Shown in pieces: positions 47,358-55,894 of a DNA stretch of 64,000 nt (position 1 is the first letter of the stretch; every line of letters begins with the position of its first letter). The notes under the pieces are model-generated. The model searched no databases and had not been told where the DNA came from. It saw nothing but the letters and a program-made list of their open reading frames with translations. A program made the translations under genes and the position numbers. The stretch spans positions 7,254,001-7,318,000 of the forward strand of contig CM007989.1 in assembly GCA_002189035.1 (NCBI GenBank), written 5' to 3'. Source of the stretch: Utricularia gibba. Taxonomy: Eukaryota > Plantae > Magnoliophyta.

Positions 47358-48190
47358 TGATGCAGAAGGATTCCTTAAAACTTGCACACAAGTGATTCTT
47401 CAGCACAAGGCCAACTAAAGTAGTTGTATGTCCGAAACCAAGTGCATTAGACAAAGAAAGAAACTCAACTCAGTAGCTGAAGTAGATGAAGACCCAACTG
47501 TTATTGCTCAAATTCCTTCCAATTGCGAAAAACCGCCGCCGCTCCACCATGTCTCCCTTTTTGACCTAAGTCTCCAAAATGGGCTACATGGCAGCATTTG
47601 GGCCGCTTACTTGGAATGGGTCATAAGCCCATTAATCACAACCCAATCACCTATTCTGTTGGCAATGAACCCCTTCCTGGATATTGCATTCTATTTATAG
47701 GACGAAAGTGGTTAAATACGACATTCCCATTAAAATAACCTTGAAAATCCAAGTTGGTTTACTTTCCAAATTGAAATATTTTTTGATAAAATAGAAGCTA
47801 AAATTATCAACTTATTAAAAATAATAAGTACTTTTAAAATTCTATACAAAATATGATCTTAACTTTTTATTTCTATTATTAGAAAAAAAGGCTAAAAACG
47901 GGAAATGCACGTGTGTTTCTTTAATTTGGTAAGTCAAATGTGTCCACAAATGTAGATAAAATGTACACGTTTTTAAGACGTTTCCAGAAAGAAACGGGTC
48001 TTTCTCATTTACGTTTTCTGATAAAAGTATAAACAAGTTTACTTATTTTCAGAAAACTTACCTTATTTCAAGAAATGCAACATTTCCGAAAATGAATAAA
48101 GATGCTCTTAGTATTGACATAGAAAAGGAATCTAATCCTCTTGATCCTAATACTCCATTGAATTCCATCTCTTGAACTAGCTTTGATAGC

Positions 48191-48343
48191 AATTTGTTGT
48201 GCAGTGTCAGGATCACTGGAAATCACCACACGCGTGAACCCAACAGAGAACGCCATCAAACCACCTCCAAATGTCTTGGACATCCTTCCCAGCACCCGAT
48301 GCGCTGCCGCGTCAGCCAATACCAACGCGGAACCCAGAACCGG
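48191..48343 (-). pseudogene. Isolated cytochrome P450 CYP78A gene fragment (51 codons)
   Basis: PVLGSALVLADAAAHRVLGRMSKTFGGGLMAFSVGFTRVVISSDPDTAQQI matches the N-terminal CYP78A signature (P-V-L-G...H-R-x-L...LMAFSVGFTRxxISSxPxTAxxI). No flanking P450 sequence. Confidence 0.75.
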
Positions 48344-48599: not shown

Positions 48600-50944
48600 T
48601 CATCCTCTAATAGATGGGGCTTTCTAAGTGCAGTGGAGACAAAAGAATAAGCAGCAAAGACTTTTTTGAATCAAAGCGAAATTGAAATGGGAATTTTTAA
48701 TACCTTAGGTGGTGGTGGTGGTGGAGATTTCTGATAATAGAGACCAGGAAACCATAATAAGAGAGGATTAGAAAAGATTAGTACATATTTTGGTATGAAA
48801 AGTGTGTGATACTTTATTAGATAACATAGAAATAAATTAAAATTATTAATGGACTTCTAATAATGGAGATCAAAGGCCAATAAAAAAGAGAGGATTAGCC
48901 AAGAGTAATTCACATTATGGAAAGGAAAGTGCACTTATTTTTAGAGTATGGTAGACATAAATATAAGAATTATTAATACCTTTTGTGGAGATGACTTCTA
49001 ACAATGAGAAGAAAATACCCCCAAGAAGAGAAGATTAGCAAAGACTTGTCCATGTTTTGGATTGAAATAAAATTTAGATTATATTTCTTGATACCTTTGG
49101 CGGTGGTGGTGACTTTTGATAGCATGCAAATAAGATGAAATATAGAAAGAATTAGTAAATACTTCAAATTACACCCTCAATTTGGATGGAGAGTATGCTT
49201 TTTTTTTTTTGAATAAATGAAAAAATATAAGTTGAAATTTTTAATACCTTTGGTGAAGGTGACTTCTAAGAGTAGAAGCAAATACCCAAAAAGAAAAGAT
49301 TAGCAAATATATGTCTATGTTTTGGATTGAAAGTAAATTTAGAATAACATACATTTAGTGTTGGTATTGTCTTTCGATAACATACAAATAAGATCACAAA
49401 TACAGAAGATTAGTAAAAAGTTCAAATAACATCCATATTTTTAAATAAATGAAAAATATAAATTGAAATTTTTAATACCTTAGGGGGTGATGGCCGCTGT
49501 GAATCCTAAAAATGAGTATAAAACACCAAATGAAGAGGGAATTTGCTTTCAAAATGTAGATTGTATCATATTTCATAATATGAAACAAGATTTAGATGAA
49601 AATTTCATAATACCTTTTTTGTTAAAGATGGTGGCCTTGGTGGAGGTGACTTCCAAAAATAGAAAACAAGTACCCCAAGAATAGAAACATCAGCAAATAT
49701 TTGTCCATGTTTTGGATTGAATGCAAATTTAGAATGCATTTCTTGATACCTTTAGTATTGGTGTCGACTATTGATAACATGCAAATAAGATCACAAATAC
49801 AGTAGATTAACAAACAATTCAAATAACACCCATATTTTTGAATAAATGAAAAAATATAAATTGAAATTTTTAATACCTTAGGGGGTGATGGCCGCAGTGA
49901 AACCTAAAAATGAGCATAAAACACCATATGAAGAGGGGATTAACGGATATTTATTCAGATTTTAGTATGGAAAGTGCATGATATTTCACAATATGAAATA
50001 AGAATACCTTTTTAGGTGATGGTGGTGGTCGGGGTGAATGCGACTTCTAATAATAGGAAGAAAATACTCCAAGAAGAGAAGATTAGTACAGATTTATCAA
50101 TGTTTTGGATTGAAAAGAAATTTAAATTGAATTTCTTGATACCTTTGGCCGTGGTGGTGACTTTTGATAGCATGCAAATAAGATGAAAAATAGAAAGAAT
50201 TAGTAAATACTTCAAATCTCACCATATTTTGGATGGAGATTATGTATTTTTTGAATAAATGAAAAAATATAAGTTGAAATTTTTAGTACCTTTAGTGGAG
50301 GCGACTTCTATTGATAGCAAGCAATACCCCAAGAAGAGAAGATTAGCGAAGACTTGTCCATGTTTTGGATTGAAAGAAAATTTAGATTGCATTTTTTGAT
50401 ACCTTTGGTGGTGGTGGAGACTTTTGATAACACGCAAACAAGTTCACAAAATAAAGAAAGAATTAGTATAGACTTCAAATGCGGAATATTCTATATTTTT
50501 GAATAAATGAAAAAATATAAATTGAAATTTCTAATACCTTTGGCGGTGATGGCCGTGGCGAACCCTAAAAATGAGCATGAAACACCACATGAAGAGAGGA
50601 TTATTTTATATTTATTTAGATTTTATGGAAAGTGAACGATATTTTAGTACCTTTTCCGATGGCGGTGGCGGTCGTGGTGATGACTTCTAACATGAGAAAT
50701 CGAATATGTCGAACAAATGGATATCAATATTTTGAAATTAAGGAAACGAAAACCGCACCTCCAGAGATGATGAAGACGACTTCCGGTAGCAGGGACCGGC
50801 TTGGCAGCCATCACCGCAGTAGTCGTTTCCGGCGCCGCATTCGCCCCACTTGCAGCACAAGTCCGGCGGACAGTCGCAGTCCTGGCCGGAAACCACCGCG
50901 AGCATGAACAAGAGAGACGACAGCAATAGCACGGACTTGCCCAT
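48600..50944 (-). CDS. Secreted hevein-extensin chimera encoded by 17 exons, 15 of them micro-exons (predicted 190 aa)
   Basis: Exon 1 50944-50759 (signal peptide + hevein + SSSSSLE), 15 phase-0 micro-exons of 18-39 nt bounded by AG and GT, terminal exon 48623-48600 (KAPSIRG*), AATAAA at 48479-48474. No stop codon in the spliced frame. Structure inferred from sequence only. Confidence 0.78.
48704..50686 (-). repeat. Degenerate tandem array of exon+intron units (about 105-155 bp) with higher-order periodicity
   Basis: Recurrent plus-strand motifs (a/g)taccttt..ggtggtg..gactt(c/t)t, catgttttggattgaaa and gaataaatgaaaaaatataa.ttgaaattt across about 16 units. Confidence 0.92.
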
Positions 50945-52256
50945 TCTATTGGTAATGAATGAGCCCCTCCCTCGATATTGCATTATATTTATTGGACGAA
51001 AGAGAGCTTTCCATTAAAATAATCTTGAGAATCTAAAACTATGTTTGTACACAGTAGATGTATAGAAAAAAATGTTCAAATTAATTTTATTATGAAATAC
51101 GATCGAATTTTATTTTAAAAATACCAGAATTTTAAAATCATTTATTATTTTTAATAAACTAACTTCTATTTTATTAGAAATATTTATCGAAATATTTTTT
51201 GATAATTAGAAACTAGACTCTTTAGTTTAGTTTGACATTTTCTTAATATATTATTTGGTATGTCAAAGGTGTCTGGTTAATGCAGATCAAATGAGCAAGT
51301 ACAATAATACAAAGTTGTCCAATCTCCTTATGCATAAGGCTGTTCACCCATTATGCATTTTTAATTTTAATTAAAATTTAAATAAATATTCTCAAAAAAT
51401 TACAAGAATTAATAATCATCGACCAAATTTAACAAAAGGAAGAAGAGAAACCCTTTGTAAATTAGACATTAACTTCCCTAACACACACAAAAAAAAGCAG
51501 ATGCAGACGCCATTAAGGTGACAGTATACTGACAAGGAAAATACATTATTAGATTAGGCAGCGGAAATTGTTAAGTCAAGGTTTTTATCCATTGCACCAT
51601 TTAGAGGAGTGGACATGGTGTGTTAGAAAAATGATTATTTTTATTGTTAAATTTTGTGTAAGAAAAGAGAAATGATGCATGATGAATTTTGTTAAAGATG
51701 CTTTATTCATTACATAGATTTTTTTTTTGCGTGGTGTTGAAATTGAGGATTATATAAATCGAACACATGTGAAGTATTGGTGGTTTTAAAATAATGAATT
51801 CAATTGAGGTTAGATCATTCAGCCCAAACTCGTAACTAAATCGAAATCATTTCAAATGCATGAGAGCTGAAATTAATATTTTGACGGATTGAGCAAGTAC
51901 ATGTAAAATTCAAGTATATAATAAATGTAAATTATGTTAAAAATTATATCTAATTAATTACTAATGACTTGCAATTTATGTTATTAGTTTACATTTATGA
52001 ACATTTTTACCAAAAATTCATTTGTTTTAATCCCAAATAATTAATTATAAATCATTTATCAAACGATGGATCACAAATAAAATAAATAATTATTTTACAA
52101 TATAATAATTGTAACCCCTCTAACGAAAAGGTGTTATTCGTGACCCATTTGAATTGCTTTCCGGGGTCATGCAAAGCAGAAAGCAAGAGGATGCAAAGAC
52201 TAACTTATTGAAAGCAGGAGGATGACACGACGGAGGAACGAGCAAATACCATTTGC

Positions 52257-53016
52257 CTAGCAACGCAGGTTGGTCCACGGATCCACTCCGAACTGGCTGC
52301 AGTAGTTCAGGTAGTTGTTCACCCTCGACGTCACCGCCGCGGTATTGCCGCCGCCGCACTCCATGCCGTTGATCGCCCTAATCGTTGCGCCGAACCCTTG
52401 CCCGGAGATTATAAGATTGTGGCACTTCCCCATCCAGAACCAGAGCGCGGTTTTCCATGCAACCTGGTTGTCTTGGGCGACTCGTTCGGGATTATTGAGT
52501 CCATTGAACCCGATGCTCTGACCCGCCGGACCGTAGTTGTAGTTCCATGATATCTGAAGCGGGCCGCGGCCGTAGTACCCTTTCCCGGGGACGCACGGCC
52601 ACTGCGTGTTGGAAGCGTTACAGTAGTTTCTCGTCGCTCCGTTGATCTCCTCTATGTAGCATAGAGCTGCAAATTACAAAAATCGGTCACGCATTTAGCA
52701 AATCTTCAAAACCCTAGCTAGAGAGGCGACACTCACACCCAGTTTCGTGAGTGACATGAGCGAAGAAGGCAGCGATCTCCCGCTTATCAGCAACAGTCCC
52801 TGTAGTGCCGAAGGCAGGATATGCAGTAGCAGCAAGAAGAAAGGATGCCCTGGTGTAAAATCCCCGGCCCGGGCACCCGCTCCCGGCCTGGTTTACAATG
52901 CTATTGAAGAACGCATCAGACACAATATCCGCCACAGTTCCGCCGCCGGAGCTCTGCGCGTAAGCCGCCAGAAGGATGGACAAGAATGAAGAAAGGATCA
53001 CCGGAGACATGCCCAT
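52257..53016 (-). CDS. Chitinase D: GH19 with no hevein domain, near-twin of chitinase G
   Basis: [45 protein letters not shown]|[23 protein letters not shown]. 70-nt intron at 52667-52736. Confidence 0.92.
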
Positions 53017-53061
53017 CCTTCCTGGCACAGAAACCCGATCCTGTCGAGTGAGTGCGCAATC

Positions 53062-53228
53062 TTTATACAATAAAAGTCAAACTCAAAGATGCTTTGATTG
53101 CCTCTTCGTTACACTGCAGAGCCATTTTCTAACATTCAAAAAAGGAAAGATTACTGTCCAGATTAATTGCGTTTATTCAACGAGAAATGGACAAGCAGTG
53201 GCTTTGTGCATTTAATGCGAATACGTCA
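53062..53228 (-). promoter_or_regulatory. Chitinase D promoter: TATA box + adjacent W-box + TGACG motif
   Basis: TATAAA at 53062-53067, TTGACT at 53075-53080, TGACGTA at 53222-53228. Homologous to the chitinase E and G upstream regions. Confidence 0.55.
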
Positions 53229-53480
53229 GATGTTTATGGACTTCGCCTTGTACGAAAGGTCACCTATTAGGTTAATTTAGATAAAAGAAGCCAATAAAAT
53301 AAATGAAAGACTATATTTATTTATTTATTTAGTTTTGCTTTGTTATAAGCAAAAGTTTTTTTTGTGATTATTTATAAAAAATATTGTAGAATTTAAAGCT
53401 ATATGATTTTTTTTTTTGGTGAAATTGTAAAATAATTACATTTATATAATTTATCTTTTAAAATTCTAAAGTACCCATAT

Positions 53481-53501
53481 AATAATAATAATAATAATAA
53501 T
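53481..53501. repeat. (AAT)7 microsatellite
   Basis: Read directly. Confidence 0.85.
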
Positions 53502-53789
53502 ATGAGTTCTTTTTTAAATTACAGTTTGTATACAGAGTAGATTTCTACAGGGCCTTATGTATTAAAAGTTTGAATTGAATAAGATATATATATATTATTA
53601 AAACATAAGCATAAAAATTTAGATGAATTCGGTATTTTAAAGGATCGTTTGCACAAAAAATTTACATTTCAATTAAAATTTTAAAAAATGCAAAGAAATA
53701 TATATATTTGTTCTTTTAAAAATTTTAATAGAAGTAAGATAAAACAGGAACCAAATTTTAAAGTTAGGGTATTTACCCTATTTTTTCCC

Positions 53790-53900
53790 ACAGTTGCTCC
53801 ACTTGGTGCAACAAGACCCGCACCACAGCCGCAGTTCTGTGCGTAAGCCACCAGGAGAGTTGATAAGAATGAAGACAAGATCACTAGAGAAAATGCCCAT
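53790..53900 (-). pseudogene. Chitinase E relic: promoter + signal peptide + partial hevein domain
   Basis: Homologous to the chitinase G 5' end ([27 protein letters not shown]) but with a frameshift right after ATG GGC ATT and a second shift in the hevein part; truncated, with no catalytic exon. Confidence 0.8.
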
Positions 53901-54599
53901 TTTTCCTGGTGCGGAGATCCTGCGTGCGCGCGATATTTATAGCGCAAAAGTCAAAACACAAATACTATTAGATTGACTGTTTTCGTGCACTGCTTAGTCC
54001 TATTCGGACAATAAAAAAGGGAAGATTAATGTTCGGATTCGATGCTAAGACAGCGGAGGTAATTGCGTTTATTTAACGAGAAATGGTCATGTGATGGCTT
54101 TGTGCATGCATTTGTTTTTGAAATTCAGGATTTTATGAGTCAAATAAGTATATATAAAGATTAAATACATAAAAAACGTGAATCATATTTAAAAAGATTA
54201 AATCCAAAAAAGTACTAATTATCTATAATTTTTTATATACGTGATTATTTTATTTTCAAATATTGATATTGAATTGTTTGTTTTAATATTTGATAAATTT
54301 GTATTACTTTTTTTTATAAATTTTTGTTTCTAAACATTACTAAATAATTGTAAACCATTTAACGAACGTACGATCAAGAACAAAACATTATTTCATAGTT
54401 TATATAAAATGATAATTTAAATTCTGATCTGCCTAACAAAGGATTTGTCAGGCGTTATTGGTATTAAGGAAACACGTTTGCATGGCTTTTCGGGGCCATG
54501 CAAAGCATAAAAGCAAGTAGAGTGGACACCATGGCTAACTTATTGAAAGCAGGAGGATGACACGACGGAGGAACGAGGAAATATCGTGCAAGCGTCTGT

Positions 54600-55894
54600 C
54601 TAGCAACGCTGGTTCGTCCCCGGATCGACTCCGAACTGGTTGCAGTAGTTCAGGTAGTTGTTCACCCTCGATGTCACCGCCGCGGAATTGCCGCCGTTGC
54701 ATTCCATGCCGTTGATCGCCCTAATCGTTGCGCCGAACCCTTGCCCGGAGATTATAAGATTGTGGCAGTTCCCCATCCAGAACCAGAACGCGGTTTTCCA
54801 TGCAACCTGGTTGTCCTGGGCGACTCGTTCGGGATTATTGAGTCCGTTGAAGCCGATGCTCTGACCCGCCGGGCCGTAGTTGTAGTTCCAGGAAATCTGA
54901 AGCGGGCCGCGGCCGTAGTACCCTTTCCCGGGGACGCACGGCCACTGCGTGTTGGAAGCGTCACAGTAGTTTCTTGTTGCCCCGTTGATCTCCTCTATGT
55001 AGCATAGAGCTGCAAATTTCAAAATTCAGTCCTGCATTTTGCTAATCTTCAAAACCCTAGCTAGAGAGGCGACACTCACACCCAGTTTCGTGAGTGACAT
55101 GAGCGAAGAAGGCAGCGATCTCGCGCTTCTTATCGGCGACAGTCCCTGTAGTGCCGAAGGCAGGGTATGCAGTAGCAGCAAGAAGGAAGGATGCCCTGGT
55201 GTAAAATCCACGGCCTGGGCACCCGCTCCCTGCCTGGTTTACAATGCTATTGAAGAACGCATCAGTCACAATATCCCCAACACCACCGCCGCCGGACGGC
55301 GGCGTGTTGTAGCAGGGACCGGCTTGGCAGCCGTCACCGCAATAATCTGCTCCCGTGCCACAGTATCCCCACTTGCTGCAGCACTGGCCCGAAGGACAGT
55401 TGCAGCTCTGTCACAAAAACAACAAATCGTATGAGACAAGAGACTTATTATCAGGTACTTATGATGCAGGATCTGCAAATAAAAATTTAGATTAGATTTC
55501 TGAATACCGCCGATGGTGGCGGCGGCGAGCTATAGCAGGGGCCGGATTTGCAGCCATCTCCACAATAGTCTTGCCCAGTGCCACAGTAGCCCCACTTGCT
55601 GCAGCACATTCCCGAAGGACAGTTGCAGCTCTGTCAAGAAAACCACAAATCGCATCAGACGAGAGACTCACCATCTGGAAATAAAATTTAGATTAGATTT
55701 CTGAATACCGTCGACGGTGGCGGCGGCGAGCTATAGCAGGGGCCGCCTTTGCAGCCGTCACCGCAATAATCTGCTCCCGTGCCACAGTATCCCCACTTGC
55801 TGCAGCACAGGTTCGCACTACAGCCGCAGTTCTGCGCGTACGCCACTAGAAGAATGGATAAGAATGAAGACAGGATCATCAGAAACTTTCCCAT
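54600..55894 (-). CDS. Chitinase G: class IV chitinase with three tandem hevein domains
   Basis: Exons 55894-55709 (signal peptide + hevein 1 + SSPPPPST), 55630-55508 (hevein 2 + SSPPPPSA), 55407-55080 (hevein 3 + GH19 N-terminal part to HETG), 55009-54600. The first two introns are phase 0 with canonical GT/AG. Confidence 0.9.

Follow-up and report, generated by a model that had tools for sequence, protein, structure and literature searches.

Introduction

In plants, the gain of introns through tandem duplication has been documented, and there are few proven examples of spliceosomal introns gained recently (PMC4974935). In the potato case described in that study, new introns arose from duplicated gene sequence, took both their donor and their acceptor from the parental exon/intron structure, and are absent from paralogues and related species. 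Here we describe a locus of Utricularia gibba (contig CM007989.1 of assembly GCA_002189035.1, positions 7,254,001 to 7,318,000; these 64,000 nucleotides (nt) are referred to as the window) at which a comparable process appears to have acted on a tandem array of chitinase genes. Two neighbouring genes of this array, the three-hevein chitinase G and a predicted micro-exon gene (MEG), share a short derived cassette that consists of a Ser-Pro4 linker tip, a GT donor and ~31 nt of intron; the cassette probably descends from one ancestral duplication junction and would have been amplified separately in each gene. As in potato, the introns would be made of duplicated gene sequence, would owe their splice sites to the parental gene structure and are missing from paralogues and related species. 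In contrast to potato, the intronised material would be a gene start (5' untranslated region (5'UTR), ATG and signal peptide), and ~16 rounds in one gene plus two in its neighbour would each have added an in-frame exon; moreover, splicing was verified in the potato case, whereas the introns of MEG and chitinase G are predicted from sequence.

Both genes also have counterparts in terms of protein architecture. Plant proteins with duplicated hevein domains include the nettle agglutinin precursor and Brassica juncea BjCHI1. Like other duplicated-hevein chitinases and lectins, among which are the two-hevein class IV proteins P0205 and P0209, chitinase G carries tandem heveins and a linker ahead of a GH19 domain, but it has three heveins with introns between them; literature searches retrieved no description, for duplicated-hevein proteins, of a linker-intron cassette that is shared with a hevein-less micro-exon array. 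In P0205 (GCA_019776745.2), a hydrophobic, signal-peptide-like stretch lies in frame between the heveins, suggesting that a duplication that included the gene start happened elsewhere too. MEG, for its part, resembles the hevein-extensin chimeric lectin, a secreted protein in which Ser-Pro(n) and Lys-rich repeats are attached to a hevein-type domain; unlike that lectin it has a degenerate hevein and a tail assembled from separate 18-39-nt exons, and protein searches found no sequence relationship between the two. Finally, the micro-exon genes of Schistosoma (10.1101/2023.06.21.545858) similarly encode secreted proteins mostly through very short symmetric exons, but they are unrelated to MEG in lineage and sequence, and their introns extend up to 5 kb, as opposed to 72-135 nt plus one of 249 nt in MEG.

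Results

Gene models of chitinase G and MEG

The elements of the two genes are as follows (coordinates are positions within the window).

55894-54600, minus strand: chitinase G, three heveins
55894-55709, 55630-55508, 55407-55080 and 55009-54600, minus strand: exons of the chitinase G gene model
55631..55708, minus strand: hinge intron 1 of chitinase G (G1), 78 nt, shared start at 55708-55678
55408..55507, minus strand: hinge intron 2 of chitinase G (G2), 100 nt, same start with one extra T
50944-48600, minus strand: MEG, predicted
~50993, minus strand: TATA-like box of MEG, located in sequence
50759..50944, minus strand: MEG exon 1, 186 nt, phase 0, encoding signal peptide, hevein-like domain and Ser-rich hinge
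49112-49095, minus strand: MEG micro-exon SPPPPK, preceding intron M14
48852..48856, minus strand: dead micro-exon, of which AAGTC alone is left, donor deleted
~48479, minus strand: AATAAA of MEG, located in sequence

Chitinase G encodes 348 amino acids that comprise a signal peptide, three hevein domains and a GH19 catalytic domain. The heveins are recognised as three Chitin_bind_1 domains of 35.4-38.5 bits, over the cutoff of 27.8, and the catalytic domain as PF00182 with E values of 3.7e-34 (exon 4) and 3.6e-14 (exon 3); its best homologues, identified by a search with exon 3, are EP3-type chitinases of Lamiales with at most 72% identity. Exon 2, 123 nt long, corresponds to one complete hevein followed by SSPPPPSA, the sequence after which intron 2 begins, and intron 1 follows SSPPPPST.

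The MEG model, predicted from sequence, has 17 exons and 16 introns, all of phase 0, and would be spliced into a secreted, Lys/Ser/Pro-rich protein of 190 amino acids with no internal stop. Its introns are GT-AG throughout (16/16) and measure 72-135 nt, apart from a single one of 249 nt. Exon 1, which matches exon 1 of chitinase G in both length (186 nt) and phase (0), is followed by 15 micro-exons (18-39 nt) and a 24-nt terminal exon, so that the encoded protein runs from signal peptide through degenerate hevein and Ser-rich hinge to a Lys/Ser/Pro-rich tail. All micro-exons are multiples of 3 flanked by AG and GT, and the combination of a signal-peptide exon with this run of symmetric exons amounts to a micro-exon architecture. 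The tail is composed of motifs such as SPPPPK, KSPPLK, GSPRPSPPK, KSPPPPPPK, RPPPPS and SPPPR; the string SPPPP occurs three times (twice as SPPPPK, once within KSPPPPPPK), downstream of the signal-peptide-like N-terminus, which yields the Ser-Pro(3-6) repeats of a putative secreted protein.

A common start of the hinge and micro-exon introns

The first 31 nt of micro-exon intron M14 (49094-49064) and of G1 (55708-55678) are identical at 28 of 31 positions, and both stretches open at a GT donor directly after an exon end that codes for Ser-Pro4 (SPPPPK and SSPPPPST, respectively). This is base for base what the original prediction had reported, as is the similar beginning of G2, which has one additional T. 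M14 belongs to a set of five introns, termed type A, whose relationship to G1 is graded.

48998..49094, minus strand: type A intron M14, best-preserved copy, 28/31 to the G hinge introns
50308..50402, minus strand: type A intron M4, 25/31 to the G1 start
50047..50142, minus strand: type A intron M6, 24/31 to the G1 start
49650..49749, minus strand: type A intron M9, 23/31 to the G1 start, shifted acceptor
49266..49352, minus strand: type A intron M12, 7-nt deletion near the donor

Within the window, the 31-mer is found with at most three mismatches at three sites (G1, G2 and M14), compared with none in 100 dinucleotide shuffles. When all 6,219 GT-anchored 31-mers of both strands were ranked against the start of G1, those with an AT content of at least 70% (n=884) matched it at 12.1 positions on average, with a standard deviation of 2.75; the 28/31 match lies 5.8 standard deviations over this mean. 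The ranks immediately below G1 are occupied by G2 (28), M14 (28), M4 (25), M6 (24) and M9 (23), and the best unrelated site reaches 20, so that matches of similar quality to unrelated AT-rich sequence, an outcome for which the prediction had allowed, were not found in the window. Smith-Waterman comparisons of G1 with the micro-exon introns give a similar picture, with z values of 11.3 for M14, 6.2 for M4, 3.8 for M9, 3.4 for M10, 2.9 for M6 and 2.8 for M3, as against -0.7 to 1.1 for the catalytic-domain introns of six chitinases. Furthermore, an nhmmer profile of the five type A units, each consisting of an 18-nt exon and its intron, is significant outside the array only at 55724-55678 (E 2.1e-5) and 55521-55478 (E 9.1e-4), that is, at the two hinge junctions of chitinase G.

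The similarity starts ~15 nt before the end of the Ser-Pro exon and continues ~31 nt into the intron. All five type A introns (23-28/31) carry this leader, as do, in weaker form, the two other intron types of the array (types B and C, 19-20/31), so that it predates the expansion of the array. Chitinase G, in its hevein units 1 and 2, and MEG are the only genes in which the Ser-Pro4 hinge tip and the shared intron start were found, and the single-hevein paralogues have neither; because of this confinement, the simplest reading is a shared module that was copied with the hevein in one case and without it in the other.

Other candidates for the same family were discarded. The hinge intron of chitinase B (47234-47133, minus strand), which had been named for comparison, is not detectably related to either M or G introns. 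The first intron of MEG (50758-50687) is not significant overall, apart from a weak match to M6 (p 0.02) and a short one to the 3' end of M14, and shows no significant similarity to the chitinase B hinge intron. A likeness between the leader and the TATA region of MEG, noticed by eye, was dropped after a test with profiles of positions -70..+65 of gene starts.

Organization of the micro-exon array

The introns of the array fall into type A (M4, M6, M9, M12 and M14), type B (M3, M5, M8, M11 and M13) and type C (M2, M7, M10 and the two halves of M15), arranged as C-B-A-B-A, C-B-A and C-B-A-B-A with repeat periods of ~260, 395 and 655 nt. Profile cross-matches and repeat families show that the three types are related to each other over their full length; Tandem Repeats Finder returned no rows in MEG or chitinase G, because the units are too diverged. 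A maximum-likelihood tree of the introns places G1 and G2 among the type A introns and shows types B and C as derived clades; the placement with type A agrees with the proposed kinship, albeit with weak support near the point of attachment. M14 gives the best match to chitinase G since it is closest to the other type A copies and thus to the family consensus.

Two units of the array deviate from the rest. The donor of the dead micro-exon is deleted at 48856, and intron 15 (48979-48731) accordingly consists of two fused M-family units. In M9, the original acceptor has mutated to GG, and an AG located 3 nt downstream (49649) keeps the frame. Overall, 30 of the 32 splice dinucleotides of the units are intact.

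A decayed gene start inside type A introns

Positions ~25-73 of the best-kept type A introns correspond to a decayed chitinase gene start, including 5'UTR, ATG and signal peptide (E ~1e-4).

49024..49070, minus strand: fossil gene start in M14, aligned to the starts of chitinases G and H
50378-50332, minus strand: fossil gene start in M4, gene-start profile match

A profile built from six chitinase gene starts (-25 to +66) matches, besides true gene starts, only M14 (49060-49024, E 1.5e-4) and M4 (50368-50332, E 2.5e-4), and a longer version (-70 to +65) reproduces the result for both introns (M14, E 2.7e-4); the aligned part begins in the 5'UTR at ~-19, spans the ATG and ends at ~+36 within the signal-peptide coding sequence. 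Reciprocally, the type A profile gives weak matches at five chitinase ATGs, all in the same profile region, the best of which are those of chitinases H (E 0.035) and G (E 0.094). When the intron tails were scanned empirically against every 90-nt window of the real sequence, in both orientations, the M14 tail found its best non-self matches at the starts of chitinases G and H; with the M4 tail, the start of chitinase H is tied with one unrelated site and followed by those of MEG and chitinase G. The more diverged M6, M9 and M12 are not significant against gene starts in either the profile search or the scan. M14 and M4 thus are introns homologous to neighbouring 5' gene sequence, as is characteristic of intron gain, and the fact that type A introns hold a fossil 5'UTR-ATG-signal-peptide region, with no hevein remnant found anywhere in the micro-exon array, suggests that the copied unit was a decayed 5' gene end.

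Chitinase G bears related traces. Directly after the shared leader, positions 25-34 of G1 read TATTTCCAGA, identical to the 5'UTR of chitinase G itself at 55913-55904, and the sequence that follows the shared start of G2 matches this 5'UTR stretch in 15/17 aligned columns (one gap). Exons 2 and 3 start one codon before the first Cys of their hevein and align with the CAG|AAC boundary at the end of the signal peptide in exon 1, which places the acceptor AG of the introns exactly at the position of the Gln (CAG) codon. Together, these features hint that the introns of chitinase G, too, may derive from a gene start and signal peptide. In the M introns, the distance from fossil ATG to acceptor is ~57 nt, versus 63-66 nt in real signal peptides, a length that would be compatible with M acceptors located at the old signal-peptide end.

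Absence of the introns from related genes

In chitinases A, H and I of the same cluster, as well as in single-hevein homologues of Handroanthus and Sesamum, hevein and catalytic domain are joined without an intron, and the hinge introns are therefore best regarded as gains. The type A profiles found nothing significant in 32 kb of chitinase loci from Handroanthus (L001) and Sesamum (L002); these loci are of the single-hevein kind, with no hinge intron, and no orthologue was met at either of them.

A possible route from linker to introns

Considered together, these observations are most simply explained by the following, moderately probable series of events. A tandem duplication would have joined the linker end and a ~24-nt leader to a point ~19 nt upstream of a chitinase ATG, after which the duplicated 5'UTR, ATG and signal peptide would have been removed as an intron, with a GT following the linker and an AG at the end of the signal peptide. 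Copied together with its hevein, the unit would have generated the three heveins of chitinase G; copied many times as a ~115-nt unit after loss of the hevein, it would have given rise to MEG, where only the 18-nt linker tip was kept as an exon. Each tandem duplication of the unit would have created one new intron and one in-frame micro-exon, and the units would have diverged into intron types A, B and C before being re-amplified as blocks of 2, 3 and 5 units. We infer a single origin of the junction, and loss of the hevein before the array expanded. The opposite polarity is conceivable in that the hevein-bearing unit could have resulted from recombination of a fossil start with a live gene start. 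The original prediction, which envisaged one hinge-plus-intron module amplified in two ways, is in keeping with the confinement of the module to chitinase G and MEG; it must be amended in that the unit also carries the fossil 5'UTR, ATG and signal peptide.

The surrounding chitinase cluster

Class IV (GH19) chitinase genes and fragments of such genes stand in tandem on the minus strand between ~44.3 and 59.6 kb of the window; their coding parts are GC-rich, their spacers and introns AT-rich. The proteins closest to the cluster chitinases are Lamiales sequences with only 63-72% identity, which marks the source as a divergent, fast-evolving member of this order with no proteins of its own in the collections searched. 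In addition to chitinase G and MEG, the array includes:

45194-44305, minus strand: chitinase A, one hevein domain
47357-46414, minus strand: chitinase B, hevein with internal deletion and hinge intron
53016-52260, minus strand: chitinase D, without hevein
53900-53770, minus strand: truncated chitinase 5' fragment with promoter, ATG and signal peptide
57964-57080, minus strand: chitinase H, one hevein
59588-58655, minus strand: chitinase I, single-hevein paralogue

Loss of the hevein occurred independently in chitinases D and B. In chitinase D, the signal peptide is directly joined to the Gly-rich hinge, and, since it shares an almost identical catalytic intron with chitinase G, this gene looks like a recent copy from which the hevein block was deleted. 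The hevein of chitinase B is reduced to its last third (47299-47254), and TRETG is found next to the catalytic Glu at ~46930, in place of the THETG of its paralogues. Upstream of chitinase B lie a MEG-type promoter and 5'UTR, split from its ATG region by ~280 nt (47710-47647 and 47366-47293); an inserted segment or an intron within the 5'UTR could account for this gap. The first 60 nt of its coding sequence (47357-47298) are identical to those of MEG (50944-50885) at 59/60 positions, far above the rest of both genes, which points to recent duplication or gene conversion.

The hevein units of chitinase G (55834-55288) are themselves mosaics: units 1 and 3 have an identical central segment, units 2 and 3 the same 5' end, and units 1 and 2 the same 3' end with the SPPPP hinge. 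The 3' end of the MEG hevein is common to unit 3.

As for the remaining members, the hevein of the 5' fragment is broken after ~70 nt by a frameshift and a stop, beyond which the sequence continues as AT-rich spacer. Chitinase I looks like a pseudogene, its hevein being without the C-terminal third and its exon 1 carrying a frameshift between the GFYT and FFAHV motifs. A GC-rich open frame of 85 codons, located between MEG and chitinase B (48071-48325, minus strand), is without a Pfam match and may resemble the N-terminal region of a CYP78A-type P450.

Discussion

Several observations weigh against a common cassette amplified in both genes, either in their own right or through the alternatives that they favour. 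Past position ~31, no pair of G and M introns is clearly above its shuffles, and the G introns, over the 47-69 nt that are left, show no alignment with M introns; homology of the micro-exon introns with the chitinase G hinge introns, as originally proposed, is thus true of their 5' part only, holding across the family for the exon end and the first ~31 nt and failing for the remainder. The tails of G1 and G2 have no significant similarity to gene starts by profile or empirical scan, and a shuffle test of the same comparison was set aside as one negative control also reached z 4.5. The ~24-nt leader, moreover, has no significant match to promoter/TATA regions in the -70..+65 profiles, where alignments never extend upstream of ~-13, and none to the chitinase B hinge intron.

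Among the alternatives, one that we consider rather unlikely would accept the homology of the introns and see no new architecture in MEG, which would be a decaying tandem array of truncated chitinase 5' ends whose frame is kept by chance. Exons of the array do diverge faster than introns, the micro-exons of sister units (48704-50686) being 75% identical and their introns 86.5%, a difference to be expected if the exons diversified, and equally if GC-rich exons decayed neutrally under AT-biased mutation. Equally in line with decay are the dead unit, the shifted acceptor, the other dead chitinase fragments of the cluster and a hevein that, at 21.3 bits for Chitin_bind_1, stays under the 27.8 cutoff and falls short of an intact domain: its CCSKWGYC motif has become CCKWGEC, with loss of Ser and replacement of Tyr by Glu at two chitin-contact positions, with all 8 Cys kept. 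In a search of 1.84 billion representative proteins, MEG exon 1 found a best identity of 62%, no orthologue, no transcript-derived protein and no hevein-plus-Pro-rich relative, so that no homologous protein is present in the public data searched; in addition, by our own rough arithmetic, the survival of stop-free frames and splice sites is not significant when compared with neutrality. Yet the 16 exons downstream of exon 1 are all stop-free multiples of 3 despite their different lengths (18, 24, 27, 36 and 39 nt), whereas the lengths of the introns are not; every intron of the model is bounded by GT and AG, and the one lost acceptor was replaced by an AG exactly 3 nt away; the GC contrast between exons (52%) and introns (26%) of the array is kept; and TATA-like box, signal peptide and AATAAA are all in place. 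In-frame exon lengths and intact splice sites may accordingly be read as marginal evidence of constraint. Against this background, we put forward as possible, and with some reserve, that tandem copying of a ~115-nt cassette created at least 16-18 new spliceosomal introns together with a new secreted Lys/Ser/Pro-rich protein within one cluster, with micro-exons diverging faster than introns.

A second alternative, in our estimate clearly improbable, dispenses with a common module: gene conversion or unequal crossing-over would have copied a tract of ~50 nt, made of the hinge tip and intron start, between MEG and chitinase G, whose intron families would otherwise be unrelated. Because the cluster is a mosaic, as illustrated by the hevein units of chitinase G and the 59/60 stretch of MEG and chitinase B, short-tract conversion could indeed have moved the cassette; the similarity also ends abruptly near intron position 31, and the leaders of G1 and M14 are 90% identical, as high as M introns are among each other (79-90%), and are followed by random-looking tails. 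Such an event would not, however, account for a leader that is found in all five type A introns and, less well preserved, in types B and C, where M14 is merely the copy nearest to the family consensus; nor does the exon part of the tract, ~73% identical by our own count, look like the product of recent conversion.

Lastly, a chance origin of the 28/31 match from AT-rich intron composition or convergent splice signals, to which the 74% AT of the introns here and the U-rich nature of donor-proximal sequence in plants would predispose, is refuted within this window by the shuffles, by the distance of the match from the mean and by the four family members that fill the next ranks, as well as by the fact that no other intron in 64 kb, nor in 32 kb of related loci, matches the profile, and we regard it as extremely improbable.

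If the cassette descends from a single duplication junction, the locus would extend documented intron gain by tandem duplication, presenting it in an unusually legible and repeated form. Known recent intron gains are usually single events; here, the raw material of the introns is still readable in the best-kept copies, their splice sites may be traced to a linker end and a signal-peptide end, and the same cassette seems to have given rise to an enzyme of several domains as well as to a series of symmetric micro-exons. Provided that MEG is transcribed, this would be an unusually clear plant case of the birth of a many-intron, micro-exon gene, with parental and intermediate forms side by side. 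In summary, the locus could show how tandem duplication makes introns and exons together, and would have a bearing both on the conversion of domain linkers into new repetitive proteins and on the tolerance of the plant spliceosome for consecutive exons of 18 nt.

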